Shown here piece after piece: positions 3,343 through 52,067 of a stretch of DNA of 64,000 nt; within the stretch, counting starts at the first letter, position 1, and every line of letters begins with the position of its first letter. The notes below the pieces were generated by a model, which searched no databases, was not told where the DNA came from, and worked only from the letters and a program-made list of their open reading frames with translations. This stretch comes from Macrostomum lignano (taxonomy: Eukaryota). Both the position numbers and the translations under genes were made by a program. The stretch lies in contig NIVC01002124.1 in NCBI GenBank assembly GCA_002269645.1, positions 124,001 to 188,000 on the forward strand, given 5' to 3'.

Positions 3343-3917
3343 TTAAGCACAGCGCACTGACGGAATCGAAGTACGGCATGCTGAAGCAATGTGGCTCTGT
3401 TTGCCACACTGCTTGCACGTCGCTTGGCGAAACTTGCATGAGGATCGCAGATGTCCGGGTTTACCGCAAGAATAGCCTTGTTTATGTGGATTGAATTTGA
3501 ACAGTGGCTTAGTAGAGGAAGCGGTCACCGTTGGACCTTGGACTTGCACTGGTTTGGTACTGTTCTGCTTCCTATGAAGCGGAATTCGGACGGCGGCAAT
3601 AGTGCGGGAAGCATATGAGTACTGTTTCGGAGAGCAGTGCGCCACGAACGGCGTCTTCAAGTGTGAGCTAGTCCTTTTTTAGCAATTTCTGCCGTAATGC
3701 TTGATCCGCAAGTTCGAAGATGAATTGCGACAGAATAAAACTAAGAGTCTCCACAAGTAAAAATGGCTGCAGAGCCGCAGGTAGCCAGGAACGCGGCCTT
3801 CGCGTCCTCATCGGTCCTCTTTGTAGCCGATAGGTAGCTGAACCTTTTAAACTATTGATCGACGTCAGGATATGACATTGGCATGTCGCCGAGCTTGCAT
3901 TCTAGTAAAGCCGCCAT
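3343..3917 (-). pseudogene. Degenerate Ty3/gypsy-type gag fragment
   Basis: Tandem zinc knuckles [14 protein letters not shown] and [14 protein letters not shown], preceded by FLATCGSAA and QFIFELADQALRQKLL gag-like segments interrupted by stops and frameshifts. Confidence 0.75.
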
Positions 3918-21455: not shown

Positions 21456-21544
21456 CTGTGGAGACAAGTAGAGCATTACTTTCATTTTAAAAAACTGGAA
21501 AAAATACTTGAAATGCTACTAAAAGTAGACAAAAGGAGGCTTAC

Positions 21545-24117: not shown

Positions 24118-24425
24118 TTTGCCTATTTCTGTCTCTCAGGTCCTTTGAAACTCTTCTATTCTTTCTTCTTTCTCTTCTCCTTTCTCTTATCTTTTCTTTT
24201 CTTTTCCCTCTTATCTCTTCTTTCTTATCCTTCCTCTTTTCACTCTTCTTTTTACTCTTTCCTCTGCTCTCTTATTCTGCCTCTCTTCATTCTTTTATCT
24301 TATCCTTCCTCTCTTTATTATATTCTCTATTCTCTTATCTTTTCCTTTTTCTCTTTATTCTTTTCTCTACTCTCTTATCTTTTTTCTCTGCTATTTTCTC
24401 TTTTCTTTACTCTCTCTATTTAACT
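24118..24425. repeat. CT-rich low-complexity tract
   Basis: Direct inspection; source of the spurious ORF 24145..24423. Confidence 0.85.
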
Positions 24426-26179
24426 CTCTTTTATGTTTTTTTATTTCATCTTTAGTTTCCTTTTATTTGGCTTATAGCCATAAGCTAGATTCTTTATTGG
24501 GCCCTTAAGGTAAAAAATTGCAGTCTCAAGTCTTTATTCTCCAGAAAGTAGCAAGGTGATTCTAATGCTATTTAGGTTAAATCCTACAGCATTAGCTTGA
24601 GTGCTTCAAAATTTACCATGTATACTCAACCTACTTGACACTTTCTTCTATGGGACTAAGGGAATGAGTGGAGCAGCAAAACTACCAGAAAAAGCAGACA
24701 AAATTCACCTGCTCATAGTTTTTATCCTGATTGAAGTACAGAGTAAAGACTTTATACTAAGAGAGAAAATAAGTCAAAAAATTCTATGAAGTTTAAAGAC
24801 AATGGCTTTATGTGGAGCAAACTTATGGAAACTGAAAGTTAGTCAATTGTATTCTGGCAAGATAAGGAAAGGAGAAAGGCAGAGATTGGTATGATTGCTA
24901 TGCTAATAAAAAGCAAACAAATTTTAAAAGTGCACAATACAATTTAAGATTAACTTAAATTAAAAGACTCAAAATTTTATAGTATTATGTCAAAAAGTTG
25001 AAGCTTGTGTCAAATTTTGGTTTTATTGGTTAATTGGATTTGGAAAAATAGTGACTATAAAAATAATCATTTTGCTATTTTAATGACTAGGCCCTACTCT
25101 TAAATAAAAATAATTACCTTTATTTTTACAAAAACCATATCTAGACTCTTAGAGCATACATTTAATTTAAATAATTGCCATTTGTGTGGCTAAGATGCAG
25201 CTAGAAACATGCAACATAAGTTCTAGAGGGTTAGGCAGGCTCTAGAACATATTTGCATCATAAGCAAAATCATATTTATAAACAAAACAGCATTAGGCAT
25301 TTTAATAATCTATAAGAAATGTGCTAACTTTTTTAGTATTTTTAGCAAATTGTAAAGAAAATTTCTTTTGATATAATAATATGCAAACATGATTTTTCTG
25401 CAAACTGAGAGCCAACTAAACTAAGCTGGTTGGGTTAGGTCTTGGCAAAAAGAACACAACAAACTCTTTATGACAATATATTGTAGCAGATGAAATGATT
25501 ATATTGCAGACAAGAGTGAAGATGAACTGGCAATAGATGAAATGACTGTCAACCCTTACATCTTATCCGACTGATAATAGTATACTTTATAAACATAAAA
25601 CATAGCAATTATTATAGAATGCAGCTTATAGGCATAGGCCCTAGAACTGATAGGGGGCCTAGCTAAAGGCATAGGCCCTAGCATTCAAAACATAGAACAT
25701 TATCATTGTTTTAAACAAAGAGAAGTAGGAACTTAATTGCAAGGAAATATATTGTTAGCAAAAGGGAATAACAAGTAGGCCTAAGCAATCAAGGTAACCG
25801 GTGCAATAGATTCAATTGGTGTAAGATGGGCAACAATAGCATGGTACACATATAGCATTTTCTATAATTTTCATGTCGGTTATAGAGGAAAATTTGCTAT
25901 GAGTTTAAAGATCTTCTTAATAGCTAGCAATAAATCTTTTTTATTTTTGTTTTTGTTTGTAGCATAGCCTAAGCTGTAAAAATGCCTTGTACTGAGATGA
26001 CTTTGGTTAAAGTACTTAGAAAGTAGTTTTTTAAGTTAGGCTTGAAAATATTCTTATAGAAAAATCAATTGTTGTTATGTCTGCCTTTCGTGTGGTTTTC
26101 TATTTTTTTAAAAGTTCACATTCCCAAGAGATGAGCAGTAACTTTGTGTGGTCTAGTGTGGTCATTGTTGTTTTATCTT

Positions 26180-26560
26180 CGTTGTAACTGTTACCAGGGT
26201 CCGATACTCCTATGTTTATATGTGCAGGTGACGGTAAGATAAACCTAGGTGGCGATCTTTGGGTTTCCCGCTCTAAATTATTTAAACACTTTTTTCAAAC
26301 TGCATATAAATAGTATTGTAGGTAGGTGCTTTTAGGTAGGTTAAGGAGTACTTGTAGAAATTTGTTTGGATTTTGTTGATGTTCTTGAGTTCAGTACAGG
26401 TTGCTAGATGTCCCCAGATTTCACAACTATATGTTATAACTGGTGTGACCAAAGAATCAAACTAATAAGCATGATATCCAGCGGGTGTCTCTTACTTTGT
26501 CCAGCAGTGAAAACATTGCAGAATTACCTTGTTTGGTCTGATAAATGTTCAACTCTCATG
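26180..26560 (-). pseudogene. Degenerate LINE RT C-terminal fragment
   Basis: FDSLVTPVITYSCEIWGH...INKIQTNFYKY resembles the post-RT 'LFDSLV.P.L.YGCE.WG...IEK....F.K' motif of non-LTR elements. Confidence 0.6.
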
Positions 26561-26899
26561 TTTAGTTAATACATAATGCACATTATTTAAATTAGGTTTT
26601 TCTTTATTTTGCGTTACCCGCCGATCGCCTGCCGCTGCCCGCGATTCTGAACATAATTTACATAATTCATAATAATTCATAAACTTTGACAGACGTCATA
26701 AACATAAAATTTGAAATTTCTTGCTACGATAAAAACAAACAGTTTACAACTTTAGTAAGCACTATAGTTTTAATGTTAAAAGCTATGTGTATTTTATAGA
26801 AGAATATAATTCTTTTTAATATTGAATTACTAGTTGTTTTACATTTACACTTTCTTTGTTCTTTAAAACCATCGAGCATTTTCAAAAATTATCTTCTAT

Positions 26900-27159
26900 G
26901 GGCCTTTTCATATTGCTTGCTCTGGTTCCAGAACCAGAACCAATTTGTGAAGTATAACTTTTTGTCTCCATAACTAGAGGGAGATACGTGCTATAAAGTT
27001 TTTATTATTGAATGACAATCGCCAAGAAGAAAGTGAAAAATTGTGCTAAGTTAGGTTGTTAAGGCAGTCAAATATTAACAGAGTTTAATAGTTATACTGC
27101 TGTTTTTCTTGGAATTCCGAACCGATTCTGGTTCTGGAATTGGTAATATGAAAAGGCCC
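26900..27159. mobile_element. Small MITE with 15-bp perfect TIRs (possibly PIF/Harbinger-like)
   Basis: GGGCCTTTTCATATT (26900-26914) pairs with AATATGAAAAGGCCC (27145-27159), with inner ccagaacc/ggttctgg repeats. No clear TSD. Confidence 0.5.
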
Positions 27160-28142
27160 CAGAATAGGTTCCAGAACCGTGATGGCGTGATCCGATTTTG
27201 TCATTTTGCAAATTGGGTTTGAGAAATTTTCTCGATCCGTTGTCATATTTCTATGGACAAATTTGAAGAAAGCATTTGAAACATTTCAAAATTCAAAAAG
27301 AATACTAAAACTTAAAAGTATGGGCTATATTTTAGATAAAAATATTTTTATCATTTGTTTTGAGAAGTAAAATAATTAAAGAGAAAGAGAAAAATTCAAC
27401 ACTTATTATTTTCCTACCAATTCTAGTTCTGGAATTGGAATTATTCTGGTTCTAGAACTGATCTTCATGAGAAGCCTATATCTTTTTAGTTGTTTGAGTT
27501 TTCAGGTTTGCTTAATGGCAAATAATGCATTTGCATTTTTATGGATATAAATATTTGTATGCCTGAGTTAGTAAAACTAAAAAGTTTAAAAAACTGAAGG
27601 ACAAGGTGCAGAGATAAGCATAATATTTTCCTTTTAAGCTTACTGATTAAAACATTTTTTATTGAAATAGGCCTGTGCCATAATTTTTTATTATTAGTTA
27701 TAAGGATTGACTAAGCATGATTTTTTTCATGCATAGTTGAAACTAGACCATGTATAAAACTGCATGACTGACTTTTTTTATAATATACATTAATTTAAAC
27801 ACACAACTATTCGTATTAATATTACCAAGTCTAGCAATTTTTATTGATTTTTAAGCTTTTTTTTCATCATGCTTATTGTTGATCAAATTTTATTATATGG
27901 CTTTATTATAATAATTATATCTGTGATTTTTTGCAATTTTGGTTTGCTTTGGTTGTGCTATGCCTATATATAAGGGGCCTATAGGCTATAGCCTGCAAGC
28001 AAGTTGCCCATAAAGTTTTTTCCTGCCAAGATTTGCCCACAATGCTTTTTTACTACAATGAATTTGGCAGCTAGATTCTCTCTGTATTGCCGAGCCCCCC
28101 AAAAAATATGCATTTAATATGCAGTTACTATCAAAAAGTTTT

Positions 28143-28780
28143 TAGCAATTCTTAAGTTTTGTTTGTTGAATTATTTTGACTTTAGAAAAGTATTGTATAC
28201 ACTTTTTTAAGTACAAATAACTATTTTAAGAGACTTAAGCTTAATAAGGCACTAATTCTATGTTTCAAAACTTGTTATAATGTATTTGACACTGAAAAGC
28301 TGCAATAGTCTATGGCCAAAAGTCCAAAACTTTAACAAGTGAACAAGTCTTAAAGGAAATAAATAAAAAGTATTATTGTCTATGGTCAAATTGCCAACAA
28401 ATAGCAAAAGCTTTATATGCTATAGTAGTGGGAAATCCAATAATAAGATATTCCCAAATGGCTTCATTGGGTTCAGTTGACAGGTTGACACCACAATTCT
28501 TCTAAGTATTTTAAATAGGTCAACTTTGTCAACTTGTTAAAGATTATTGATGTTTAGTCTGGACCATAGACCTTTTTTTCAAGTCAAAAAATGTTCAAAC
28601 ATTCTGGCTAAAGACTATTGCAGCTTTCCAGTGTCAGAACATTATAACAAGTTTTGAAGCATAGAATTAGTGCTTAATCAGGCTTATGTCTTTTAAAAGT
28701 ATTTATTTGTACTTAAAATAGTTGGTAGATTACTTTTCTAGAGTCAAAATAATTTAACAAACGGAACTTGACAATTGCCA
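28143..28780. mobile_element. AT-rich palindromic (foldback/MITE-like) element with long imperfect arms
   Basis: 28161-28325 aligns by eye with the reverse complement of 28598-28762. Inner gtctatggtc/gaccatagac also pair; centre ~28460. Confidence 0.75.
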
Positions 28781-29255
28781 AGTTTTGATCATGTAAATCT
28801 CTTTACTAAGATTAATTACATCTAATAAGCATTAGGAAGGCAATGCAGACTAAATCTGCAATAAAAAAGCATTGCAAGCAAACCTCGGTAGGGGGGGGGT
28901 GGCCGTAGCCCAGCAGTAGTGCAGCTGCTCTGGTGTGCCAGCAACCTAGGCTTGATTCCAAGTATAGCACATTAATTTGGGGCTGAATTGGAATCTCGGC
29001 TTGGCTCTGCTTATACAATTAACAGCCTTAAGAGCCAACCCCTCAAGGCGCAGTGAAGTGTATATGCCTAACATTAATATAAATTTAGGGCCACTATATA
29101 CTATTGTGTGAGTGTGTGCCTGCGTACGTATCCACGCGCTTGTATGCCTGCTCAGGGGGGATAGAATGAGCAGTAATGTCTCATGCCGGTTGTGTGCCTA
29201 TGTTGCTTAAAGTGCACCAGTGTGCACACAACCCCTGCCTCTAAAAAAACCTTGG

Positions 29256-29458
29256 TGGGAAAAAACTCTGCAGGAAACTCACTTGTGGGCAATCCACTTG
29301 CAGGCAAATTGCACTGCAGGCAAATCTTGGTGGGAAAATCTCCATAGGCAATTTGCTCACAGGCAAAATGCACTGTGGGCAAATCTTAGCAGAAAAAGCT
29401 TGGCAAGCAAATCTCCTGCAGGCAAATCTTGGCAAGCAATTCATCTGCAGGCAATTCT
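29256..29458. repeat. Degenerate ~21-bp repeat (gcaggcaaat core)
   Basis: Direct inspection; a related short patch lies at ~27990-28050. Confidence 0.75.
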
Positions 29459-30696
29459 CATGGACCCCAAATAAATTCTTCTGAGGTCACAAAAGCTTAG
29501 GACACTATTTAACATACAAATTAATTGGCTTATTAATCTGTGGTCTTAGGCTGAATATTATTATTATTATTATTATCATTGTTATTATTATAATTAACAG
29601 TTTAAGAAAAGCTAAAGTCCACAGTTTACAAGAGTTTGCAGAAGATGAATCATGTCAAGCTAAGTGCCCACTGGGTTTCTTGATGGCTTACTGAGGACAT
29701 GAAGCTGGGTTGTCTATCCAGACAGCTTGTGTGTCTAGGTTCAATAAGTCTATGACTGATGTTCCTCTACTTAAATGAACATCTCTCTTGAAATACAAAT
29801 CCAAAGCAGTTTGAGTCATTTTAAAGAAGAGACTTACTTGCTACTTTCAAACAACACCAAACTTGTGTCAATCCAACTTACCAAACATCTGCTACAAGTG
29901 AAAGTAACACTATTTTCCAGATACCCCTCGTGTTTCTTCCCTTATTTATTTAAAACAAAAATAAGGGTGAGAAGAAAAACGAACTTTAAAATACCTATGT
30001 TTAGTAGTAATAGTAATAGTAATCATATTAATAGAAGTAAGTAGTAATACTGGATGGCATATACCTTCACATGTATAAATTAAATTACATTTTGTATAGC
30101 AATTTGTGTGCCACCTGATAGAGTAGTAAGATCTAGAAATATCTAAATAAAGCTGGGCACCAATGGTGGACCTTGATCCCAATCTTGATTCCAACTAATC
30201 CCAAATTCTGACTTTTATGAGTTAAATCTCACCTAACCATATTTTCCCATCCCAGTCAGGCTCTAGGGGCACCATGATATACATAAGAGATATACTATAC
30301 TCAGCAAACTGAGGTCAGTGAGGACCTTTTTTGATGATCTTAGCTTATAATATGAAATTAGTCAGGCAACTTTTATGCTTAAATGTTTTCTAGTACTCCT
30401 ATGTATTTTTTCCTGTTTTGGATTTATTCACTTCATATATTCAAAGTTTTATAGCTCAGAATATTGATAACATTTGAACATCCAAGGGCACATTCAAAAA
30501 TTTTTTGAGGGGGCAGCTATACCAAGTACTATAACCCAAAATAGACCTTGCATAGTTATAGGCCAATAGTAAAGTTGTTGATTCTTATTTTATAATTACT
30601 CTCTACAATATAGTAATGTATTTTTATATCCATAATTGATAATTTTCACTGAAGACAATCTTGAACTACAATTTTACTTTCCTATTTCAGCTGTCA

Positions 30697-32135
30697 ATGA
30701 AAATGCAATTCTCAAGAGGCCTAAGCAAAATAAATTTATTTGTGCACAGCTCATCAACGTTCATCCAACCATTTAGAGCTTTTACCAGGCATGGTAAAAA
30801 TCCCTTCAATAGGCTGTCCTGGGATTCAATACAGTAAGTTTTTTATTGTATATTCAAAAAATAATTGCCATATCCATTGTCTAATACTGGTTTAGATTCT
30901 AAGTAGTGTATTACGTGTTTCCTTCTGCTTTTTAATGCACTTCAGACCCGACAAAACTGAAAAGACGTCCAGTATTGACGATTCTGTCGATGCTGTTATT
31001 AAAGTGGCCGAATTGGCGGCTAAACAAGCGGACGAAGCCGCCACAACGGCAGCAACCGAAGCCCTTCTGGCGGCCAGTCAGCGGCATCTCAGCCTGCTGC
31101 CAGAGGATGCCAGATTTCTGCGCTCCGGCCTTAGCCCGCTGGCTCTGCTGCCTGACGATCAGGCCGAGTCTCCCGTTGACTCGGCAGCTGCCGGCCGGGC
31201 CAGACAGGCAGTTCCGGCCGGCTGTCCGCACTGGGGCCGAGTGTCGGAACCGGCGGCCAGGCCGGAACAGACTGGCGGGCGCAGCCAGCAGCAGCAGCTG
31301 AATCCAACCTATGCCGACTGTGCCAAGCGAGACTGGGCCAGGGTGTTCCTGCGGCCGCCAACTAATCCTTGGCAGGAGTTGATTCAGCTGACCGCCGAGG
31401 GCAAGCTCTGGCACTATCCGATTGATAATGAGCAGGTAGATTCTGAGTCGTTTTTTTGTCGTCATGGGCTTGTTTGTTTTAAAGTGGCTTTTTATGGCGT
31501 CAATTTCGCGCCACGACCCCTTATTTGGGTCTACGACGTTTGCCAGCCGGCTGGCAAACGTCTCGCTGGCAAATGCCCGGCTGGCAAACGTCTCGCTGGC
31601 AAATGCCCGGCTGGCAAACGTCGCTATCCCCCCCCTCATTTGATTCCGTGCGCGTTTATTTGAGAAAATTTTTCGATTCACACCCAAGACACAGTGAAGT
31701 GCACATGCCTGACGATTAGAAAGTCAGGGCCGCTGTACACTCCTGTGTGAGCGTGTGTTCGAATTATGTCTATCGAGTCAAGATGGCAAATTTAGGATGG
31801 TCAGTCCCCGATCCGCCACCTGCACTGACCAAATTTTCACTGGCAAAAGTGCACAAAAGTACAACTTCAATTTGCAGGGCCGAGAACTGGAGCCAGACGG
31901 TCGGGTATCTTTCCAGCGTCACGTGATGCTTGACCGGCAACTGCAAGACTGGGTGCCCAAGACTGGGCCAGTCCGGCACTTCATGGAGACCGTGTGCGTT
32001 GGCCTGTCAAAGAATCCCTACCTGACAGCGGCTGAGAAGGCCGATCACCTGGATTGGTATCGGCGCTACTTTGCTGACAAGATTGACAGAATTCAGGCTG
32101 TCTATGAGCAGTCTGCTGAGCCTACTGAAGCCTGA
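30697..32135 (+). CDS. MRPS31: Mitochondrial ribosomal protein S31, join(30697..30833,30946..31435,31878..32135), 294 aa
   Basis: WQELIQLTAEGKLWHYPIDNEQ and FQRHVMLD...GPVRHFMETVCVGLSKNPYLT...HLDWYRRYF match MRPS31. The N-terminus is basic and Ser-rich like a mitochondrial presequence. GT-AG phases 2 and 0 are consistent; AATAAA at ~32202. Confidence 0.93.
31543..31625. repeat. 30-bp unit x~2.7 in MRPS31 intron 2
   Basis: ggctggcaaacgtctcgctggcaaatgccc repeated. Confidence 0.85.
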
Positions 32136-38149: not shown

Positions 38150-38318
38150 CCAATAGGAGCCGAGCAGCCAATAGGAGACGGCCTGGGGCAGCCCAGGGGC
38201 CACGCGAGAGGGGCGGCGGCCACGGCTAGAAAAGGAGGCGCCACGTGGCGGGCCTCGTGTCAGGCGCACTCTGTTTAGCACTCAGCAGGCAGTCAGAACG
38301 CAGGCCAAACACGCGACC
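38150..38318 (+). promoter_or_regulatory. Proximal promoter of achaete-scute copy 1 (shared with copy 2)
   Basis: CCAAT at 38150 and 38168, CACGCG at 38201 and 38310, GC-box-like gggcggcgg, palindromic GCCACGTGGC at 38240, and CTCGTG (N-box) at 38254. Confidence 0.55.
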
Positions 38319-39195
38319 ATGTCATCAACAGCTGACAGGCAGCACTTGCCGGTGCCCTCCTTCCTGCGACTGCAGCAGCTCCGGGCAGCAGGCGACGCCT
38401 CCGGGCCGACTCGGCAGCCGCTGGGCGAGCGGTGCTCCAACCTGCCGCCTCGGCCGCCGCAGAAGCCGCCGGGCTCCGAGGCGGCCAAAGCCGCGGCCGC
38501 TGCCGCTTCAAACGCCGCCGCCAACACCGCCGCCGCCGCACGTCCAGCCGCCTCGTCGATGCAGCGTCGCAACCAGCGCGAGAGGAACCGCGTCAAGCTG
38601 CTCAACCTCGGCTTCGAGCGGCTTCGCCAGCTGGTGCCGAGCGATGACGGACAGAGGCTGAGCAAGATCGCCACCCTGCGGGCCGCCATCGCCTACATCC
38701 GCAGCCTGCAGGAGCTGCTGGACCAGGACGACTGCGGAGGCTGCGGCTGCGACGGCTGCGCGGCCTGCGGCGGCCCCGGCGACTCCTGGATGGCGGAGCA
38801 GCCGCGGCAGGAGGCCGAGTCGGTGGCGACGCGGCCGGAGGGCCAAAACACCTTCAGCTTTTAATTGAGTGCTCTGCGCTTTTTTGCGAAACTCTGCTTT
38901 TCGGTGCTCCAATGCTTTTTTGCTGTTTTCTGCTTTCGCTTTCGTAGCATTTTTACCTGCGTTTTTTCGCTCCAAGTTTTTTTTTCCGTGCCGCCTCTGT
39001 CAAGCGAGAACATCCAAGCCAAGCAGCTTCTCTTTCAGCATCTTCCGCATCAGCGGGGCAACTCAGCAGCGCTTGGATTTTGTCGCTTTTCAGATCTTCT
39101 TTCTCAGCCTGCTTTTTTCAACTCAGCTTTTGCTGCTCGCTCAGATTTTCTGTTAGGAGTTTTCTAGATAGGAACTTTTCTTTATTTTTTTAGAT
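38158..39195 (+). repeat. Left arm of ~1.04-kb inverted duplication
   Basis: Near-identical reverse complement of 50385..51427. Confidence 0.95.
38319..38864 (+). CDS. ASCL: Achaete-scute family bHLH transcription factor, copy 1, intronless, 181 aa
   Basis: [25 protein letters not shown]...[23 protein letters not shown] matches the achaete-scute bHLH; Ala-rich N-terminal segment. Confidence 0.93.
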
Positions 39196-39826
39196 TTCTC
39201 AGATAGACTTTACAATTTCATAGACTTTTAGGATTTTTCTTGTGTTTTATCTCCAGAGCTCAATTTCTTGCTGTGCGGCACGTGTCCCTATTAATTGATA
39301 TCGGTGTCCGAGGCTCCGACCTTCCCTCTGTTGCTGTCGCCTGTCGAGTTTTTTTTCACACTTTCTAAATTGAATTCTTCTATGTAAATGACTCCCTCCG
39401 TTTCGCTTGGTGCTTTTAATCTAATTAAATTATTGCTCATGTTTCAATGCTATCATAGTTAGTATTTGTAGTCAGCTATTAAAATTGACGTAACTAAATA
39501 AATCTAATCTCTGGATTTTGTACTTTTACGTAGCTCGTATTTAAAACAAAAAACGAACCTTTGAGTTTGAGTTTGTTTGCTATTTGATTTCTTCTGACTA
39601 ACTAAATGTATTCATTCGTAATTGTCGGAGTGCAAGTGCCTGGCCTTGTCAGTTCAAGCAAGTGCAAATTGAATGTCCAAAATGTCAGGGACTGGGGTTA
39701 TCCCAATCTGTATTCTCACACCTGAGATTGTAGCTCGCACCTTTGTTATACTCATTTCGATGTCTGAATTTCAAAACGCAAAACGCATGGAACACCTTGA
39801 GATTAATCGCTTTCCGCAATCTCATT

Positions 39827-40520
39827 CCCGAATCACACCTGAGATTATCTCAATTCAGGATTCTCACACCTGAGATTATCTCCATTCAGGATTCTCACAC
39901 CTGAGATTATCTCCATTCAGGATTCTCACACCTGAGATTATCTCCATTCAGGATTCTCACACCTGAGATTATCTCCATTCAGGATTCTCACACCTGAGAT
40001 TATCTCCATTCAGGATTCTCACACCTGAGATTATCTCCATTCAGGATTCTCACACCTGAGATTATCTCCATTCAGGATTCTCACACCTGAGATTATCTCC
40101 ATTCAGGATTCTCACACCTGAGATTATCTCCATTCAGGATTCTCACACCTGAGATTATCTGCATTCATGATTCTCACACATGAGATTATCTCCATTCAGG
40201 ATTCTCACACATGAGATTATCTCCATTCAGGATTCTCAAACCTGAGATTATCTCCATTCAGGATTCACACACCTGAGATTATCTCCATTCAGGATTCTCA
40301 CACCTGAGATTATCTGCATTCATGATTCTCACACATGAGATTATCTCCATTCAGGATTCTCACACATGAGATTATCTCCATTCAGGATTCTCAAACCTGA
40401 GATTATCTCCATTCAGGATTCTCAAACCTGAGATTATCTCCATTCAGGATTCTCAAACCTGAGATTATCTCCATTCAGGATTCTCAAACCTGAGATTATC
40501 TCCATTCAGGATTCTCACAC
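39827..40520. repeat. 31-bp minisatellite, ~22 copies
   Basis: Unit ctgagattatctccattcaggattctcacac. Confidence 0.95.
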
Positions 40521-40564
40521 AATACGCATCCCGAGATTGTATCTATTTTATCTATTTAGCTTCT

Positions 40565-41035
40565 CACACCATGAGATTATCCCTACTCAGATTCGCACGC
40601 CTTGAGATTATCCCCGATTCTGATTCTTGCTGTCTGAGATTATCTCAAATTCAGATTCTTGCTCTCTGAGATTATCTCAAATTCAATATCATTCTCTGAG
40701 ATTATCCCGAATTCAATATCATGCTCTCTGAGATTATCTCAAATTCAATATCATGCTCTCTGAGATTATCTCAAATTCAATATCATGCTCTCTGAGATTA
40801 TCCCGAATTCAATATCATGCTCTCTGAGATTATCCCGAATTCAATATCATGCTCTCTGAGATTATCCCGAATTCAATATCATGCTCTCTGAGATTATCCA
40901 AAACTCAGATTCTCACGCATTGAGATTATCTCTATTTAGATTCTTGCTCTCTGAGATTATCCCAAACTCAGATTCTTGTTCTCATAGGATCATCTCAAAT
41001 TCAGATTTTCGGTCTCTAAGATTATCCCTATTTAG
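40565..41035. repeat. ~32-bp related degenerate minisatellite
   Basis: Unit tctgagattatcccgaattcaatatcatgctc. Confidence 0.85.
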
Positions 41036-41715
41036 ATTCTCCGCCCCTGTAATATTTTCCCATTTAGATTGTCGCTCCCTGGACAATGAAGAAATGGAAT
41101 AAAAAGCTATAAACTTAATTTATGCCTCGAGACTCAACTGGCCCAGAGTTCACTGTGACATTAAGGCATCTAAAATTCAATTCACGCTCGGCATGCTGAA
41201 GTGAGGCAGCTGAGGCCATATCGGTCGAATTCCGATCAAAAACATTTTCATCCAATCTTCCCATTCTTCCTTTCAGATTTCGGGGCCGCTCTCTGCAGAG
41301 CCCCCGCAATCTGTCAACGTGGAAAAACTTCCAACTTATAGTTCTAAGTGACGAAAATTGGGAAATTATGAGCCAGACTTGGACTGACTGAGGATAAATA
41401 TCCCAATAAATATATAGTGTCTTTGTTTTTTATATCCCAATCGATACCTCTTATCCCACCCTCCCGGGGAGCCGCAAATATTTGCAGTAGTGGCGCATCC
41501 GGCTCCGATTCCGCCCACACATCTGTCGCGTGGATTCCGGTCTGGGCAATTATGAAAATCATCAGTTAGTTGATAATTTATTATCCCACTCAGCATCATC
41601 TGGGACCGGACAAGGCCAGGGAGACTTGGCAGTGAAACTCCCTCACCCAGGTGGCCAGGCCAGTTGGATTCCAAGAAATAGCTTGCCAAGAATGAGCACA
41701 AACTCAGTGTTTATG

Positions 41716-42305
41716 CGATGCGATGGGATAAGATGAGAGAGCAGAAACATAAGAAGATAGGAGAGAAGATAGGAGAGAGAAGATGAGAGGGTAGCGGGAG
41801 AAGAGAAAAGAGGGACAGAGCAGAGAAGATAAGAGAGGGGAGAGACGAAAGAAGAGAGAAGAGAGGAGATAGGAGAGAAGAGAGCCGAGGGAAGAATGGA
41901 GAGAAGAGAACCGAGGGGAGAGTGGAGAGAAGAGAGGAGAGGGGAGAGAAAAGAGAATGGAGAGTGGAGAGAAGAGAACCGAGGGAGAGTGGAGAAGAGA
42001 GTGGAGAGAAGAGAGAAGAAGGGAGAGTGGAGAGAAGAGAGAAGAAGGGAGACTGGAGACTGGAGAGAAGAGAACCGAGGGGAGAGAGGAGAGAAGAGAG
42101 AAGAAAGGGAGAGAGAAGATGGGAGAGAGAAGATGGGAGAGAAGATGGGAGAGAGAAGATGGGAGAGAGAAGATGGGAGAGAGAAGATGGGACAGAGAAG
42201 ATGGGAGAGAGAAGATGGGAGAGAGAAGATGGGAGAGAGAAGATGGGAGAGAGAAGATGGGAGAGAGAAGATGGGAGAGAGAAGATGAGAGAGCTGAGAA
42301 GAGAC
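41716..42305. repeat. GA-rich simple repeat (gagaagatgggagaga)n
   Basis: Direct inspection. Confidence 0.95.
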
Positions 42306-42936
42306 GCAAACCTTGAACGGTTGTGATTGCTATTGTGAAGTTTCAAGGGACCCGAGGGCTGGAGTATGTCGAACCCCAGGGCCGCCAGCCTAATGCTCAG
42401 CCGCACACGGAGCCGGTCGGCCCTACTGAAATTTCACACTGATTCGTCCCGTTCCTTTAAAAAAAGCATCATAGTCCAATTATTAATTTTTTCATACGCA
42501 AGCGAGCGAGCCTCGATACCCTGTAATTTTTGGCAAACAGCTCTCGCCATCCCGGGGGGGGGATGTTGGAAATTCAATAACCAGCGCGGGAGCTGTTTTG
42601 GAACTTTTTTTCCAAACCAGTGACCGCCTGTTGCTCTGCGCCCCCCCCTGCGTAATGGCGGTTTGCGTGCCGGTTCGGCGCCAACAAAAACTCCCCCGAG
42701 TCCCCGCAAACTTGGGATTGGGGGTGGGGTGGAGGAAAATTAATTTTTAATTTAATTGCCATGCAAGCTAAAAAACAGGGCCCCGCCAGTTCCGCATTTC
42801 ACTTCCGCACCGTCTGATCGAATCAGCGAATTCAAGCAGAGAGACCATCGATGAGGCCGATCTCCAGCCCAGGATAGCTATAGACATGGACTGCTAAACA
42901 TACTTTGACTGGAAGGCCAAAGTCCTACAGCGGGGG

Positions 42937-43453
42937 CATCATAAACCCGAAATATCACAAACCCGAAATATCACAAACCCGAAATATCCCAAACCCGAAA
43001 TATCACAAACCCGAAATATCACAAACCCGAAATATCACAAACCCGAAATATCACAAACCCTAAATATCACAAACCCGAAATATCACAAACCCGAAATATC
43101 ACAAACCCGAAATATCACAAACCCGAAATATCACAAACCCGAAATATCACAAACCCGAAATATCACAAACCCTAAATATCACAAACCCGAAATATCACAA
43201 ACCCGAAATATCACAAACCCGAAATATCACAAACCCGAAATATCATATCTCCGAAAGTTCTAGCAATGTCCAACACTATTTTGGTTTTCGGAGTTATGAT
43301 ATTTCGGGTTTATGATATTTCGGGTTTGTGATATTTCGGGTTTATGATATTTCGGGTTTGTGATATTTCGGGTTTATGATATTTCGGGTTTATGATATTT
43401 CGGGTTTACGATGGGAAGTGCTTTCGGAGTTGTGATTTTTCGGGTTTGTGATG
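42937..43453. mobile_element. Foldback-like element: inverted arrays of a 16-bp unit around a short loop
   Basis: (aaacccgaaatatcac)x~19, then ctccgaaa...ttttcggag, then (gtgatatttcgggttt)x~9. The outer ends catcataaacccgaaa / tttcgggtttgtgatg are complementary apart from one mismatch. Confidence 0.75.
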
Positions 43454-44139
43454 GCGACCCTCCTCCAGTTCGTGCGGCAGGGAAACTGGCCGCCGAGATG
43501 CAGACAGTGTACACTGACGGACGATACGAAAGTCAGAGCCGCTGTCCCCAACCAGTCCAAAATGCTTCTCAGGGTCCATGGCTGTGGCGCATTACCAGCC
43601 ATATTTGTGTTGCTACGCCAGCGTTTCCGCCAAAATGCCAGTTGGAGTTGGGGAAGGGGGGCGCCCTTCCTTACCTCACTGGGCCGGAAATGTCATGCGG
43701 CCCCAACCCGTGTCTGCATCAAAAATTTCCCCGTTTAAATCAGTTATCTTTTGTTGCCGTGGGGTTGTGGGGATATTCATGAAAAAATGAAAAATATCGG
43801 TTCTCGAATAACAGAAGTCGCGATTATTTTTTCTCTTATCAGTGCTGCCTCCTTGATCTTGAGTCGGTGGCTGGGTGGGCATGAGATCCCGACTTTGTCA
43901 TTGATCCTTGTTTTCTTTCAAATTGGAAAAACTGCTGGTAAAGTGAGAGTGCAGGGCGAGTGCTGCTCTTGCTCGCTTGTCATGCGGGTACCAGCGGTTT
44001 TTTTAACTATTAAGAGGAAAACAATCTATCTACTGATCTTCTTATAGCTGCCATTTGATAAATTATTTGCTGCTTTTGCTAGTTTTTGAGGTGAATGCTT
44101 TTCAACTAAACTGTGGGAGTCATCACATGAAATCATATG

Positions 44140-45436
44140 AGTCACGGGGATCATGGAGGTCACTGGGGATCATGAAAGTCATCACCCTGAGATCATTGGA
44201 GTCATCACCTGAGATCATTGGAGTCATCACCTGAGATCATGGAAGTCATCACCTGAGATAATGTAGGTCATCACCTGAGATCATTGGACTCATCACCTGA
44301 GATCATGTGAGTCACCACCTGAGATCATGAAAGTCACCACCTGAGATCATTGGAGTCACCACCTGAGATCATTGGAGTCATCACACCTGAGATCATGGGA
44401 GTCACCACCTGAGATCATGGGAGTCATCACCTGAGATCATGGGAGTCACCATGATCACCACCTGAGATCATGGGAGTCATCACCTGAGATCATGGGAGTC
44501 ACCACCTGAGATCATGGGAGTCACCACCTGAGATCATTGGAGTCATCACACCTGAGATCATGGGAGTCACCACCTGAGATCATGAAAGTCATCACCTGAG
44601 ATCATCAAAGTCACCACCTGAGATCATAAAAGTCATCACCTGAGATCATAGGAGTCACCACCTGAGATCATCAAAGTCACCACCTGAGATCATTGGAGTC
44701 ATCACCTGAGTTCATGAGAGTCAACTGGGATCATGGGAGTCAACTGGGATCATGGGAGTCATTGGGGATCATGGGAGTCATTGAGGATCATGGGAGTCAT
44801 TGAGGATCATGGGAGTCAACTGGGATCATGGGAGTCATTGAGGATCATGGGAATCATCATCTGAGTTCATGAGAGTCAACTGGGATCATGGGAGTCATTG
44901 AGGATCATGGGAGTCATTGAGGATCATGGGAGTCAACTGGGATCATGGGAGTCATTGAGGATCATGGGAATCATCATCTGAGTTCATGAGAGTCAACTGG
45001 GATCATGGGAGTCAACTGGGATCATGGGAGTCATTGAGGATCATCGGAGTCATCACCTGAGTTCATGAGAGTCAACTGGGATCATGGGAGTCATTGAGGA
45101 TCATGGGAGTCATCAGATGAGTTCATGAGAGTCAACTGGGATCATGGGAGTCATTGGGGATCATCGGAGGCATCACCTGAGTTCATGAGAGTCAACTGGG
45201 ATCATGGGAGTCATTGAGAATCATCGGAGTCATCACCTGAGTTCATGAGAGTCAACTGGGATCATGGGAGTCAACTGGGATCATGGGAGTCATTGAGGAT
45301 CATGGGAATCATCATCTGAGTTCATGAGAGTCAACTGGGATCATGAGAGTCAACTGGGATCATGGGAGTCATTGAGGATCATCGGAGTCATCACCTGAGT
45401 TCATGAGAGTCAACTGGGATCATGGGAGTCATTGGG
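44140..45436. repeat. ~19-22-bp minisatellite with a switch of unit type at ~44715 and higher-order blocks
   Basis: cacctgagatcatgggagtcac units, then aactgggatcatgggagtc / attgaggatcatgggagtc blocks. Confidence 0.95.
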
Positions 45437-46189
45437 GATTTTTCAAATCGGACCTATGGGTGCTTAATAAGCGGGAATTGTATGATTTAATCTATGAATA
45501 TATTACGCCCCTCAAATGCTATTTTCATTGTAAAGATGCATCTACATGGAGCTATTTAATCTCATCCCAGCTTATACCGCTCCCACCATTAAGCATAGAA
45601 GTTAGTCTTGTTCGACTGCAGTCTTTTAATTATGCCTCTAAGTCATAAAGAATGCATTTATTGCTCTCTGAGCGATACCTAGACTTGAAATGAGCAATAT
45701 AAATATGAGAGAAGCATCAGCAAGTTTATTGAGAGCTTATAGCTTTACGACAGCAGACCAATAGACTGGAACAATTAGAAAGAACCGCAATTGGCCTCAA
45801 AGGGGAATTATGGAGCACAGCTGAACAAAGATTCCCCAATTTCTCTGCAGACCCAGTACCCCCCCCCCCCCTAACACTCACGGACGCAAACAAGTTCCTT
45901 AGGCTCTGGCAAACAAAAATTTGAACTGAACTCGAACTGCGGAGCAATAAAAACTCAGAATAATCATCACCATCAGGCAACCCCCCCTGTTCACTTTCTC
46001 AGACACTTCAGCCTCAGAGTTGCCAAATATTTGCTGTGACTGTTGTCTGTTCCCTGTTCTCACGAACCCGTGACAGCCTCTCGCACTCTGGCTTCATCAC
46101 CATTGCAGGGCCATACAGTGTCCCTATTTTGGTTTTATGGGGAATATTTCTTCTTCATCTACACATTTTTCATTCAATTCGAGTCCCCA

Positions 46190-47552
46190 ATTGGAATCTC
46201 ACGAAGTATAACCCATCGAGAATCTCTCCGTACTAAATCTTCCCAATCGAGAATCTCATCCTTACTGAATCATCCCAATCGAGAATCTCACCATACTGAA
46301 TCATCCCAATCGAGAATCTCACCATACTGAATCTTCCCAATCGAGAATCTCACGCTTACTGAACCTTCCCATTCGAGAATCTCACCATACTGAATCTTCC
46401 CAGTCGAGAATCTCACCCTTACTGAACCTTCCTAATCGAGAATCTCACCATACTGAATCTTCCCAATCGAGAATCTCACCATACTGAATATTCCCAATCG
46501 AGAATCTCATCCTTACTGAACCTTCCCAATCGAGAATTTCACCTTTACTGAATCTTCCCAATCGAGAATCTCACCCTACTGAATCTTCGCAATCGAGAAT
46601 CTCACCCTTACTGAACCTTCCTAATCGAGAATCTCACCATACTGAATCTTCCCAGTCGAGAATCTCACCCCTACTGAACCTTCCCAATCGAGAATTTCAC
46701 CTTTACTGAATCTTCCCAATCGAGAATCTCACCCTACTGAATCTTCCAAATCGAGAATCTCACCCTATTGAATTTTCCCAATAGAGAACCTCATCCTACT
46801 GAATCTTCCCAGTCGAGAATCTCACCCCTACTGAATCTTCCCAATCGAGAATTTCACCTTTACTGAATCTTCCCAATCGAGAATCTCACGCTTACTGAAT
46901 CTTCCCAATCGAGAATCTCACCCTTACTGAACCTTCCCAATCGAGAATCTCACCCTACTGAATCTTCGCAATCGAGAATCTCACCCTTACTGAACCTTCC
47001 TAATCGAGAATCTCACCATACTGAATCTTCCCAGTCGAGAATCTCACCCCTACTGAACCTTCCCAATCGAGAATTTCACCTTTACTGAATCTTCCCAATC
47101 GAGAATCTCACCCTACTGAATCTTCCAAATCGAGAATCTCACCCTTACTGAATCTTCCCAATCGAGAATTTCACCTTTACTGAATCTTCCCAATCGAGAA
47201 TCTCACCCTACGGAATCTTCCAAATCGAGAATCTCACCCTATTGAATCTTCCCAATAGAGAACCTCATCCTACTGAGTCTTCCCAGTCGAGAATCTCACC
47301 CCTACTGAATCTTCGCAATCGAGAATCTCACCCTTACTGAACCTTCCCAATCGAGAATCTCACCCTACTGAATCTTCCCAATAGAGAACCTCATCCTACT
47401 GAATCTTCCCAGTTGAGAATCTGACCATACTGAATGTTCCCAATCGAGAATCTCATCCTACTGAATCTTCCCAGTCGAGAATCTGACCATACTGAATGTT
47501 CCCAATCGAGAATCTGACCATACTGAATGTTCCCAATCGAGAATCTCACCCC
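46190..47552. repeat. 31-32-bp minisatellite
   Basis: Unit aatcgagaatctcacc(c/a)tactgaatcttccc. Confidence 0.95.
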
Positions 47553-48603
47553 AGTAAATATCCCCTTTAAAAACCCTATCTCGGGTTACCAATCGAACTG
47601 AGTTCCAACTTGCCATCCGTCCGTCCGCAGCTTCCGCAGGCTCTTCATCTCAGACAGCGATCAGCTTCTCAAAAAACTGTCTATTACAGATAGAAATCTG
47701 GAGAGCGCAGCAGGAACTGCATTGGAGCAGCGGGGAAAAATCTGCATATTTGATGGAAGATTGGAAAGATTAAACTTGCTGTCAACGCTCTCTACGGGGT
47801 GGGAGCTAAAAATGGGAAAAGTGGTCGAAAAAAAATCCCAGACAGACACAGAATGAGTAGCTCACTAGAGTTGCCCAGCAAGCAGGCTTAGAATGTTGCT
47901 GCTCAGTTTTTCCTCTTATCAGGACAACGGGGGGTCCACCCCCCTAGGGAGGGTCCGATGCCCCCCTCCGCCCAGTGGGAGCTTTTATTATCTTCCCGCC
48001 GGCCCTGAAATCCTCAAGGGGGGGGGTAAAAAATCCCATCGATAAATGAATGGGATTCAGCCTTCGACACGCAACATTGAGGCTTTTTTCATAACCAACC
48101 TCGAAGCTTTTTCATGCCGCGCAAAAGTTCTGAATGCTGAGTAGCCTAATAATAATGATAATCATTCGACCCTTGACTGAGAAGTGCCGCCCCAGTTTTA
48201 GCTGACAGAAAAAAGACGTGGAGTTCTTGAACGCCACTCGAGACAGACAGACAGGCAGGCAGGGGGCCCGTGGGTGTGGCTGTAATTGGCTAAATGGGAG
48301 AAAAAAATCGCATTTTTTTGCTTATAATATAATTTGACAACAGACAAAACTATCACTTCCGTTATCTGTGAGACTGTGTTTTTCCAGGAAATATGAGTGT
48401 ATACATTATGATTATGTATGCATGAATATAGAAGGAAAATGAAAGTAGCCATGATGCGATACCCCCACAGACACGTGCTGCGCCACGTGCGCGCAGGTGT
48501 CACCCCGTCCGGTTATGCCAAGAAGTTTTGATTTTGAGTTTTAATTGCTCGTCATTAGCAGCTGATGCTGTATCAGACTGAGTAGCTCTGGTTAAAACAC
48601 AGC

Positions 48604-49096
48604 TTGGGGTAGCGCCATACATACTGAAAGATAGAACGGGGTAGCGCCCTTCGTACTGAAAGATAGAACAGGATAGCGCCCTTCATTCTGAAGGATAGAA
48701 CGGGATAGCGCCATACGTACTGAAGGATAGAACGGGATAGCGCCATACGTACTGAAGGATAGAACGGGATAGCGCCCTTCATTCTGAAGGATAGAACGGG
48801 ATAGCGCCCTTCATTCTGAAGGATAGAACGGGATAGCGCCATACGTACTGAAGGATAGAACGGGATAGCGCCCTTCGTACTGAAAGATAGAACAGGATAG
48901 CGCCCTTCATTCTGAAGGATAGAACGGGATAGCACCCTTCATTCTGAAGGATAGAACGGGATAGCGCCCTTCATTCTGAAGGATAGAACGGGATAGCGCC
49001 ATACGTACTGAAGGATAGAACGGGATAGCGCCCTTCGTACTGAAAGATAGAACAGGATAGCGCCCTTCATTCTGAAGGATAGAACGGGATAGCGCC
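48604..49096. repeat. 32-bp minisatellite with a 96-bp (3-unit) higher-order period
   Basis: Unit gaaggatagaacgggatagcgcccttcattct; the translated repeat is 32 aa. Confidence 0.93.
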
Positions 49097-49544
49097 ACCA
49101 ACTCAAAGCATGTACTTCAAAGCATGGACATAGACCGCTATCAATCCCCTAAGATAGTTGTGTTCGTAAACTCATAATTTGTATTTTAGGTGATAAATTG
49201 CACCGACAGAAGGGGGCGGGGACCGGTGACACCTGATCAGTCAGTTATGGGGTGGGGAGGGGCAGAGACAGACGGACAGACAAGACAGACAGTGAATTGC
49301 TCCGGGACAAGATGAGCGATTTGAAACTGTTTTGAAGCCTGAGTGAGCTTTCGCGCGTGTGCATGGAAAATCCCTTTTGTGCCTGTGCAACTTGGACCAT
49401 AGACTGACTATGCGCCCTCCGGGGTTTGGCCTAGAGAGCAGGTTGATTGCGCAACTACGCTTAAAAACGCGCCATCATCAATAGCTATCAACGTTACGGG
49501 AAAGTTTAGTCTATAATGTGCTACATTTTATGTCTACAACGCCC

Positions 49545-49862
49545 TATTTGATGTCTATAAGGAATCATATTTGATTTCTAGAAGACGCCATATTTGATGT
49601 CTATAAGGCGCCATAACTGATGTCTATAAGGCGCCATAACTGATGTCTATAAGGCGCCATAATTGATGTCTATAAGGCGCCATATTTGATGTCTATAAGG
49701 CGCCATAATTGATGTCTATAAGGCGCCATAATTGATGTCTATAAGGCGCCATAACTGATGTTTATAAGGGGCCATAATTGATGTCTATAAGGCGCCTTAA
49801 CCGATGTCTATAAGGCGCTATAATTGATCTCTATAAGGCGCCATAACCTATGTCTATAAGAC
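49545..49862. repeat. 23-bp minisatellite
   Basis: Unit gatgtctataaggcgccataatt. Confidence 0.93.
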
Positions 49863-50384
49863 ACTTTAGCTGAAAATTATCAGATAAATGTCAATTTAAA
49901 AAAAACTTAAGCTGTTGATTTGCTGAACTCATGCTCAAAGCTTTCATAATCACGCCCAGGCCACGTGTCCCTGCTAGCGCCATCTTCGATAACACGTGCG
50001 CACCGTTCTAAACATCCTTCCCTACGATCCCTACGAGTTTTTTCCCTACGAGCAAATAAAGTTAAATTCAACAGGGCTTAACTTTGTACTGACTTGAAAT
50101 TTAATTTGAAGTAGAATTAAGCTACGGGGATGCATATATATTTAGTTATGTTATTATTTACACAATAATTGCTCAACAAAGCAAAAAACATATAAGATTC
50201 GAATGAAATTGAAATCGAAACTGACTGTCGAATTGAATAAAAATTAAAAAAACAGAAATAAAACATTGGATACAAAGAGCAAACAAGAAAACTGACAAAA
50301 GTTCAAATGAAAGTGCCGCAACAAAAATCAAGACAATATAAAATACAAAGGCCTATATCTAAACAAAAATGTCTACACAAAATT

Positions 50385-51427
50385 AATCTAAAAAATAAAG
50401 AAAAGTTCCTATCTAGAAAACTCCTAACAGAAAATCTGAGCGAGCAGCAAAAGCTGAGTTGAAAAAAGCAGGCTGAGAAAGAAGATCTGAAAAGCGACAA
50501 AATCCAAGCGCTGCTGAGTTGCCCCGCTGATGCGGAAGATGCTGAAAGAGAAGCGGCTTGGATGTTCTCGCTTGACAGAGGCGGCACGGAAAAAAAAACT
50601 TGGAGCGAAAAACGCAGGTAAAAATGCTACGAAAGCGAAAGCAGAAAACAGCAAAAAAGCATTGGAGCACCGAAAAGCAGAGTTTCGCAAAAAAGCGCAG
50701 AGCACTCAATTAAAAGCTGAAGGTGTTTTGGCCCTCCGGCCGCGTCGCCACCGAGTCGGCCTCCTGCCGCGGCTGCTCCGCCATCCAGGAGTCGCCGGGG
50801 CCGCCGCAGGCGCCGCAGCCGTCGCAGCCGCAGCCTCCGCAGTCGTCCTGGTCCAGCAGCTCCTGCAGGCTGCGGATGTAGGCGATGGCGGCCCGCAGGG
50901 TGGCGATCTTGCTCAGCCTCTGTCCGTCATCGCTCGGCACCAGCTGGCGAAGCCGCTCGAAGCCGAGGTTGAGCAGCTTGACGCGGTTCCGCTCGCGCTG
51001 GTTGCGACGCTGCATCGACGAGGCGGCCGGACGGGCGGCGGCGGCGACGTTGGCGGCGGCGTTGGCGGCGGCGTTTGAAGCGGCAGCGGCCGCGGCTTTG
51101 GCCGCCTCGGAGCCCGGCGGCTTCTGCGGCGGCCGAGGCGGCAGGTTGGAGCACCGCTCGCCCAGCGGCTGCCGAGTCGGCCCGGAGGCGTCGCCTGCTG
51201 CCCGGAGCTGCTGCAGTCGCAGGAAGGAGGGCACCGGCAAGTGCTGCCTGTCAGCTGTTGATGACATGGTCGCGTGTTTGGCCTGCGTTCTGACTGCCTG
51301 CTGAGTGCTAAACAGAGTGCGCCCGACACGAGGCCCGCCACGTGGCGCCTCCTTTTCTAGCCGTGGCCGCCGCCCCTCTCGCGTGGCCCCTGGGCTGCCC
51401 CAGGCCGTCTCCTATTGGCTGCCGGCT
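50385..51427 (-). repeat. Right arm of inverted duplication
   Basis: Reverse complement of 38158..39195 with a few substitutions and small indels. Confidence 0.95.
50710..51267 (-). CDS. ASCL: Achaete-scute family bHLH transcription factor, copy 2, intronless, 185 aa
   Basis: Identical bHLH protein sequence to copy 1. Differences: +4 aa in the Ala tract ([13 protein letters not shown] vs AAANTAAAA), A>G in CDGC(A/G)AC, and E>D in EA(E/D)S. Confidence 0.93.
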
Positions 51428-52067
51428 TCAGCCAATCAGGAAAGCTTTGAGTTTTGCTTCACGCGTAGAGGCAGGAAGGCTGCTAGACTGTGTGTCCTTG
51501 CTGAATTCTTTTCAGTAAATCTCGATTCTTTTCTGCGACAGATGGCGCCCAAACATCTTCCTCTGTTCTACTCGATCGCTGAGACTGAATCTCTTCCGTT
51601 AACTGTTCCTTGTTGCCGTGGATTCCCGGGCCATAGCGTGCCGCTTCCCGCTGATTTCCGCTTCTAAATGCTTTTTCTCTGCTTGTTGTTGGGCGAGAAA
51701 ATTGAGCTATAATTTGTATTCGTACTGTTTCAATAGCAACTTGGTCTAGTCCTTTCTGTCACCTGGGCGCCATCGCTCAATTATGGGGGGGGGGCAATTA
51801 ATCTGATTAACAACCCAGAAGCAATATGTCTCATAATTTTCATAAATCTGTTTTGGTCTCTTAAGCTGCTTTGCCTGCAATGTAGGGGGCAGGTGCCACC
51901 CAATAAACAGAGTTATTGCGATTTTGGAACTATATTGAAACAATTTCCTGAGCTTGTAAAACATTCTGCTTGCAATGCTTCATGACTTTTGCTTGTGATC
52001 AAAGATTTCAGTGTAAACTGGAGCTTCAGAAACTTTTGCGAGTGCCTGATTTTAAACTAATCTGATG

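Follow-up and report, generated by a model that had tools for sequence, protein, structure and literature searches.

Two Near-Identical, Convergent Achaete-Scute Genes in Macrostomum lignano, Probably a Young Inverted Segmental Duplication

A 64,000-nucleotide stretch of the Macrostomum lignano genome (GenBank assembly GCA_002269645.1, contig NIVC01002124.1, positions 124,001–188,000 of the forward strand; hereafter the window, whose own coordinates are used throughout) contains two near-identical copies of an intronless basic helix-loop-helix (bHLH) gene of the achaete-scute (ASC) family, which lie tail-to-tail in the arms of an inverted repeat. This pair is probably a real, young, small-span inverted segmental duplication of a complete ASC gene. 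In such an event, a 1.04-kb segment comprising the intronless gene, about 160 nt of promoter and 5′ untranslated region (5′UTR), and the first 332 nt of the 3′UTR would have been duplicated as an inverted copy at a distance of 11.2 kb, likely via template switching or templated break repair. Both copies would be expressed and would most likely be redundant, dose-doubling sources of one transcription factor. Their distal regulation, 3′UTR ends and poly(A) sites would differ because these are located outside the arms. On this reading, the pair is an ordinary young gene duplicate, and there is no sign of a function beyond that. Its divergence can be gauged against a related gene carried by a 1,164-bp Logan contig (SRR31628394; hereafter L001), whose encoded protein is referred to as P0001.

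Organization of the Inverted Repeat

Three collinear inverted blocks are detected in the repeat scan, at 38164–38534/51052–51422 (99% identity), 38481–38984/50590–51093 (94%, ungapped) and 39019–39190/50390–50561 (99%). BLASTN merges these into a single alignment of 38158–39196 with 51427–50385, which has 97.43% identity over 1051 columns, 7 mismatches and 6 gap openings corresponding to 20 gap positions (E = 0). The identity of the arms is about 99.3% at aligned bases and 97.4% with indels counted, and an inverted match of 1 kb at 97% is far beyond chance. The left arm (38158–39196, plus strand; 1039 nt) consists of 161 nt upstream of the coding sequence (CDS), the CDS itself and 332 nt of 3′ sequence, and the right arm (50385–51427, minus strand; 1043 nt) is its reverse complement (97.4% identical). 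An earlier interpretation made from the letters of the window, here called the sequence-only reading, had described near-identical convergent arms around an 11.2-kb spacer, each with promoter, intronless CDS and about 330 bp of 3′ sequence. This description holds, with coordinates that agree to within 1 nt and with upstream motifs that are shared with L001 (see below).

In a MAFFT alignment of the arms, the 5′ untranslated part has a single substitution (38262). Within the CDS, the sole indel (12 nt, in frame) falls in a GCC-rich Ala tract (38526–38546), where three substitutions lie close to it, and the other differences are AGG/CGG (38583), a CG/GC dinucleotide swap yielding GCG/GGC (38761–38762) and GAG/GAC (38819). 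The 3′ part has a 1-nt indel in a T run and a 5-nt AAGCA indel, and small indels are also found at both edges of the arms. These 7–8 substitutions and few small indels bear out the claim that the copies differ by only a handful of changes, and when the differences are counted as mutational events, they amount to about seven over the 1039 nt, of which four affect the CDS and three the non-coding parts.

The similarity stops at the arm edges and gives way to unrelated sequence, as had likewise been proposed: Smith–Waterman scores between the flanks fall within the distribution obtained with shuffled sequence, both upstream (z = 0.46) and downstream (z = 1.46). When the arm is compared with the entire window by BLASTN, just the two copies are returned and no third match. 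The flanks are unique to each arm and lack mutual similarity, so that the arms do not represent two haplotypes of a single locus, and an allelic duplicate is thereby ruled out. A larger, decayed palindrome is also ruled out, given flanks without residual homology and the composition of the spacer (39197–50384; 11,188 nt, located 3′ of both genes), about 50% of which is occupied by nine minisatellite arrays (units of 14–32 nt) that represent different families and show no mirror symmetry about its centre.

The same features bear on whether the pair is an assembly artefact, in which only one copy is real or distant (e.g., homeologous) paralogs have been misjoined via minisatellite-rich sequence. 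Such an artefact is improbable. Minisatellites, which are hard to assemble, do make up about 46% of 33–64 kb, but the arrays of the spacer, being of different families and unmirrored, provide no common array for an inverted mis-join. The arm divergence of 0.3–0.7% lies within the allelic range of many invertebrates, and two of the differences are homopolymer-length changes, which are typical of long-read errors. However, unique, non-repetitive flanks of 0.5–1 kb are present on each side of both arms and are mutually dissimilar, and the window contains no N. Fold-back chimeras are palindromes without an 11-kb unique spacer, and a chimera of this type would not leave the spacer that is seen here.

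Retrocopies characteristically span exactly the mRNA, end in a poly(A) tract, have no promoter and are flanked by target-site duplications. The pair does not have this origin, because upstream promoter motifs lie inside the arms, the 3′ ends of the arms have neither an A-tract nor a target-site duplication, and the arms stop in the middle of the 3′UTR, before the poly(A) signals. In the repeat scans of the window, no terminal inverted repeats are found around either arm, and target-site duplications are absent from both arm ends. Scans of this single window therefore give no sign of capture mediated by a transposable element, although such capture may still have occurred.

Coding Sequences and Family Assignment

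The left gene (38319–38864 including the stop codon, plus strand) is an intronless open reading frame (ORF) of 181 amino acids with a Pfam HLH domain and a match to ASCL1, and the right gene (50710–51267, minus strand) is an intronless ORF of 185 amino acids. Both ORFs are intact and the genes are convergent. Compared with the left protein, the right protein has four additional residues (an AANV-type insertion in the Ala tract) and the substitutions T/A, A/G and E/D, all of which are outside the bHLH region, and the two proteins are 98% identical. The bHLH-coding segment of the left copy (38565–38711, plus strand; residues 83–131) overlaps a 64-nt run (38656–38719) that is identical to L001 at the DNA level. 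The corresponding segment of the right copy (50863–51009, minus strand; residues 87–135) has a single synonymous difference from the left copy (AGG/CGG).

The two proteins match the Pfam HLH domain (PF00010) with 62.7 and 62.6 bits (cut-off 20.7; E = 2.9e-17 and 3e-17). In a PDB search, ASCL1 is the best match with 61.8 bits (E = 1.2e-15), whereas MYF5, NeuroD1, Twist1 and MyoD score 35.0, 33.4, 32.0 and 31.8 bits, respectively. When 1.84 billion representative proteins are searched with a profile, one close relative, P0001 (E = 5e-82), is recovered, together with 4,404 further matches restricted to the bHLH at E ≤ 0.001, of which 364 reach E ≤ 1e-10; named proteins among the top matches are mostly ASCL2, ASCL2-like, Ash or achaete-scute. 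Both the basic region and helix 1 conform to the ASCa type, and the ASCa signature is present in the bHLH. By these sequence characteristics, both genes are assigned to the ASC family as ASCa-like group-A bHLH genes. The achaete-scute identity put forward in the sequence-only reading is therefore upheld at the family level by the Pfam, PDB and profile matches, and by the tree described below.

ASC factors heterodimerize with E-protein/Daughterless, bind to E-boxes of the CAGSTG type and specify neural or secretory precursors. From family membership, the product of the window gene would most likely dimerize via its HLH and bind to E-boxes, and homology predicts a proneural or neurogenic role for the gene. 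An acidic C-terminal motif occurs in ASCL1/2 and in the proteins of the Drosophila achaete-scute complex (AS-C), unlike the window protein, which has no such motif and whose C-terminus is not conserved even in P0001. The motif, which is conserved in insect AS-C proteins as well as in ASCL1/2, is typical of ASCa members, not defining for them. In an exact-sequence look-up of both ASC copies and of a G-protein-coupled receptor (GPCR) ORF elsewhere in the window (GPCR1), no identical protein is on record. A metagenome scan for related loci, using a protein pattern and a degenerate DNA pattern of the ASC signature, also returned nothing.

Affinity to Flatworm ASC Proteins

Within the bHLH, the window protein resembles the platyhelminth proteins annotated as 'achaete-scute 2' (Clonorchis, Paragonimus, Fasciola, Schistocephalus, Cichlidogyrus). 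The shared features are the (L/V)NLGF ending in the basic region/helix 1, the short loop and the helix-2 sequence LSKI(A/S)TLRxAIxYI, and in the set of proteins with this loop length and these residues, all named members are from trematodes, cestodes or monogeneans. A small CDS without introns is a further point of agreement. The bHLH identity is 63–67% to 'achaete-scute 2' proteins of trematodes, cestodes and monogeneans and about 56% to vertebrate ASCL1. Consistently, in a neighbor-joining tree of 141 distinct bHLH domains (56 residues, without bootstrap), the window gene and P0001 are sister to a clade of 17 members, in which all 13 named members are from Neodermata. From this placement, the host would be predicted to be a platyhelminth or a relative.

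Outside the bHLH, P0001 is the only similar protein among about 15 billion, and the window protein differs from known ASC proteins in its length of only 181–185 amino acids, its lineage-specific N-terminal motif and its Cys/Gly-rich tail. The N-terminal motif and the Cys/Gly-rich tail are both common to P0001, which is 68% identical to the window protein overall and 93% identical in the bHLH.

The identity with L001 also has a local peculiarity at the DNA level. The 64 nt encoding helix 2 (38656–38719, mirrored in the right copy) are identical to about positions 739–802 of L001. In the ungapped block between the window gene and L001, 18 of 56 degenerate codons are synonymously different, and the 64-nt stretch corresponds to a run of 20 unchanged degenerate codons (permutation P ~0.001). 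The predicted RNA fold of the stretch shows nothing unusual (z = −0.37). This identity could stem from constraint at the nucleotide level, from a target site for small RNAs or from codon bias.

Divergence between the Copies, Purifying Selection and Gene Conversion

Between the left and right copies, synonymous divergence (dS) is 0.029 and non-synonymous divergence (dN) is 0.008, corresponding to 4 synonymous and 3 non-synonymous differences. Over the whole CDS, the comparison with L001 gives a dS of 0.78 and a dN of 0.26 for the left copy, and a dS of 0.72 and a dN of 0.26 for the right copy. Measured against the divergence from the L001 species, the copies thus split, or were last homogenized, in roughly its last 4%. 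This supports the earlier view that the pair is very recent or homogenized (dS of 0.029 compared with about 0.75 to L001), two alternatives that look alike here. In the bHLH only, dS between the left copy and L001 is 0.485 and dN is 0.036 (ratio ~0.07), and this region is under strong purifying selection.

Two points weigh against a young duplication. Synonymous sites differ at 4 of 142 positions and the non-coding parts of the arms at 1 of 489 (Fisher P = 0.010), which would not be expected under simple neutral divergence; the excess of synonymous change is mostly located in slippage-prone GC-rich repeats and is gone when events, not bases, are counted. In addition, an old duplicate that has been converted over the full 1.04 kb would look identical to a young one in a single genome.

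It is rather unlikely that the window contains an old inverted pair of this kind, in which ectopic gene conversion between the arms has preserved near-identity over the full 1.04 kb. Inverted orientation and short distance favor intrachromosomal conversion without rearrangement (PMC3924832; PMC3966223), and the present arms are both inverted and close. The greater likeness of the non-coding arm ends relative to the synonymous sites could likewise be due to conversion tracts formed recently at these ends. A span of 293 nt contains seven of the eight substitutions (P = 0.015), which is a form of clustering that conversion could produce, but P rises to 0.089 once complex events are merged, and the clustered changes sit in the GCC-repeat Ala tract and in a TGCGGC-repeat segment, both of which are slippage-prone. 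Moreover, there is no decayed homology beyond the arms (z = 0.46 and 1.46, as above), and hence no sign of an older, larger duplication. A young segmental duplication is the explanation retained below.

Promoter and 3′ Ends of the Two Copies

The proximal promoter and 5′UTR of the left copy (38168–38318, plus strand) contain a CCAAT box (38168–38172), CACGCG sites (38201–38206 and 38310–38315), and the motifs TAGAAAAGG (38227–38235) and GCGCCACGTGGCGG (38238–38251), which are conserved with L001. In the right arm, the same set is mirrored at about 51268–51418 (minus strand). The elements common to the window gene and L001 upstream of the ATG are CCAAT, TAGAAAAGG (in the form TAGAAAA(A)GG), GCGCCACGTGGCGG, and ACACGCGACCA directly before the start codon. 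Of these, GCGCCACGTGGCGG is an exact 14-nt match containing a palindromic CACGTG E-box, for which we estimate a chance expectation of about 2e-4 (161 × 380 nt). All of the motifs shared with L001 are inside the arms, and an identical set of conserved proximal promoter elements is therefore present in both copies. In other animals, Hairy/E(spl)-class repressors bind to sites of the CACGTG and CACGCG types, and it is a reasonable hypothesis that the ASC gene may be repressed by a Hes-type factor.

At the outer edges of the arms (38150–38172 and 51414–51436), each copy has two CCAAT boxes, the arrangement of which differs. The right copy has an inverted pair, as in L001: an inverted CCAAT (ATTGG; 51432–51436, minus strand) located 5 nt outside the arm gives ATTGG-N13-CCAAT, compared with ATTGG-N12-CCAAT in L001. 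The left copy has two direct CCAAT boxes, the outer of which is beyond the arm in an imperfect repeat of GCCAATAGGAG; this direct second CCAAT in the left flank (GCCAATAGGAGCCGA) resembles a junctional tandem duplication. Of six comparisons with L001, one yields a GAAGCGGAAAT match (z = 3.5), which is situated further upstream of the right copy. Because both the ATTGG-N13-CCAAT arrangement and the GAAGCGGAAAT match agree with L001, there are weak hints that the right copy may be parental and the left copy derived.

Candidate poly(A) signals are located outside the arms, at 39424–39502 on the plus strand for the left copy (ATTAAA at 39424, ATTAAA at 39478 and AATAAA at 39497) and at 50100–50105 on the minus strand for the right copy (ATTAAA). 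The first AATAAA/ATTAAA signals are thus about 230–300 nt past each arm, and the arm is smaller than the whole transcription unit.

The position of these signals bears on the possibility of a regulatory hairpin or convergent-transcription locus, in which read-through or overlapping antisense transcription of the arms would give double-stranded RNA (dsRNA), and the small interfering RNAs (siRNAs) derived from it would adjust ASC mRNA levels, as at the hairpin RNA (hpRNA) loci of Drosophila. The sequence-only reading had raised such a hairpin RNA, for which there is no support in the sequence. The arms are able to pair over about 1 kb, and Drosophila hpRNA loci that arose from inverted duplicates of protein-coding genes exist (PMC10317233). 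However, both arms have intact ORFs and their own promoters, unlike the gene fragments that are usual at hpRNA loci, and transcription would have to continue for more than 11 kb through the nine arrays. Such a locus is highly improbable, because candidate poly(A) signals follow each arm and the loop would be an 11.2-kb spacer, half of it minisatellite. There is similarly very little chance that the convergent pair is a functional unit in which conversion keeps the promoter-plus-CDS modules identical, read-through dsRNA brakes ASC dosage via RNA interference, and the 64-nt stretch shared with L001 serves as an RNA-level target.

Comparison with Known Clustered and Inverted Gene Pairs

In the Drosophila AS-C (ac, sc, l'sc and ase), as in the window, ASC paralogs are clustered in cis by local duplication. 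The AS-C paralogs are old, diverged and sub-functionalized, and share dispersed enhancers over about 100 kb. In the window, by contrast, there are two near-identical copies in convergent orientation in a non-insect genome, with about 160 nt of promoter duplicated. At least two ASC paralogs are therefore present in cis as in an AS-C-like complex, but they lack the divergence of such paralogs (98% protein identity, dS of 0.029). The analogy with the insect AS-C drawn in the sequence-only reading is apt for clustering by local duplication and is otherwise loose, in that the bHLH groups with flatworm ASC genes. Its term 'mini proneural complex' is an overstatement for two redundant copies, and tblastn of about 160 ASC proteins against the 64-kb window reveals no bHLH locus beyond them. 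Shared enhancers in the spacer, which that reading also suggested, would be no more than a possibility.

Further counterparts are the palindromic Hsp70Aa/Ab and Hsp70Ba/Bb genes of Drosophila (PMC3924832) and the hsp16 inverted repeat and hsp70-7/8 of C. elegans (PMC3966223), which are inverted pairs homogenized by ectopic conversion. Like the window pair, these are adjacent, near-identical inverted paralogs of about 1 to a few kb. They differ from it in that their spacers are 0.4 to about 2 kb and they are stress genes, whereas the window pair has a spacer of 11.2 kb and encodes a developmental regulator. In addition, conversion of the heat-shock genes has been demonstrated by shared polymorphism and by an identity that is greater within than between species, whereas the window pair is known from a single genome.

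Inverted duplication of coding sequence with high arm identity is also a feature of Drosophila hpRNA loci. In an hpRNA, a short loop joins non-coding arms, usually gene fragments, within one transcription unit. The window contains instead two complete genes with separate promoters and candidate poly(A) signals, separated by an 11-kb loop; the hpRNA loci produce hairpins that yield endogenous siRNAs after inverted duplication of protein-coding sequence (PMC10317233).

As a young duplication, the pair shows that a key developmental bHLH regulator was duplicated in a lineage-specific manner, within an animal clade that sequence databases hardly cover. It would also provide a clean case of a newborn, small-span inverted duplicate that took with it the core promoter, and not the distal regulation or the poly(A) site. 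From pairs of this type, dosage change, sub-functionalization or concerted evolution can arise. By itself, the pair is expected genome biology and involves no new mechanism.

Spacer and Remainder of the Window

The only internal inverted structure of the spacer lies at 42938–43412, where the 16-nt minisatellite ATCACAAACCCGAAAT locally reverses its orientation (42938–43245/43286–43412), giving arms of 127 nt that are 94% complementary and a loop of 29 nt, and the flipped array in the middle of the spacer is a potential hairpin or cruciform. Spacer ORFs of at least 80 amino acids are mostly translations of repeats and include no convincing gene, and no known RNA families or tRNAs are found in the window, nor is a Macrostomum spliced-leader sequence.

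Minisatellites with units of 14–95 nt (Tandem Repeats Finder score ≥200) constitute about 25% of the window and, as mentioned above, about 46% of 33–64 kb, and many spurious long ORFs are associated with them. The CpG observed/expected ratio is about 0.8–1.0 over most of the window. This ratio and the minisatellite content are both more in keeping with an invertebrate than with a vertebrate genome. The region 22000–30000 is AT-rich (GC content of 0.28–0.36) and CpG-depleted, with an observed/expected ratio of 0.06–0.2 in three of four 2-kb bins and 0.57 in the fourth. This block suggests mosaic methylation, perhaps of gene bodies, or a different sequence origin.

Exons resembling those of diacylglycerol lipase (DAGL) are located on the minus strand at 21475–21086, 20481–19975 and 6736–6440, and their only database match is hagfish DAGL (25% identity). 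Two intronless rhodopsin-type GPCR ORFs are apparently nested in the DAGL-like introns. One of them (7343–8542, plus strand) has no relative at E ≤ 0.001, and the other (17513–18712, minus strand) has a Pfam score of 26.4 bits, which is under the cut-off of 30.5. An ORF with CCHC zinc-knuckle-like motifs at 3346–3678 (minus strand) suggests a remnant of a retroelement gag gene. Two exon-like ORFs at 30935–32132 (plus strand) belong to a mitochondrial ribosomal protein S31 gene, with a Pfam MRP-S31 match of 3.5e-11 on the first.

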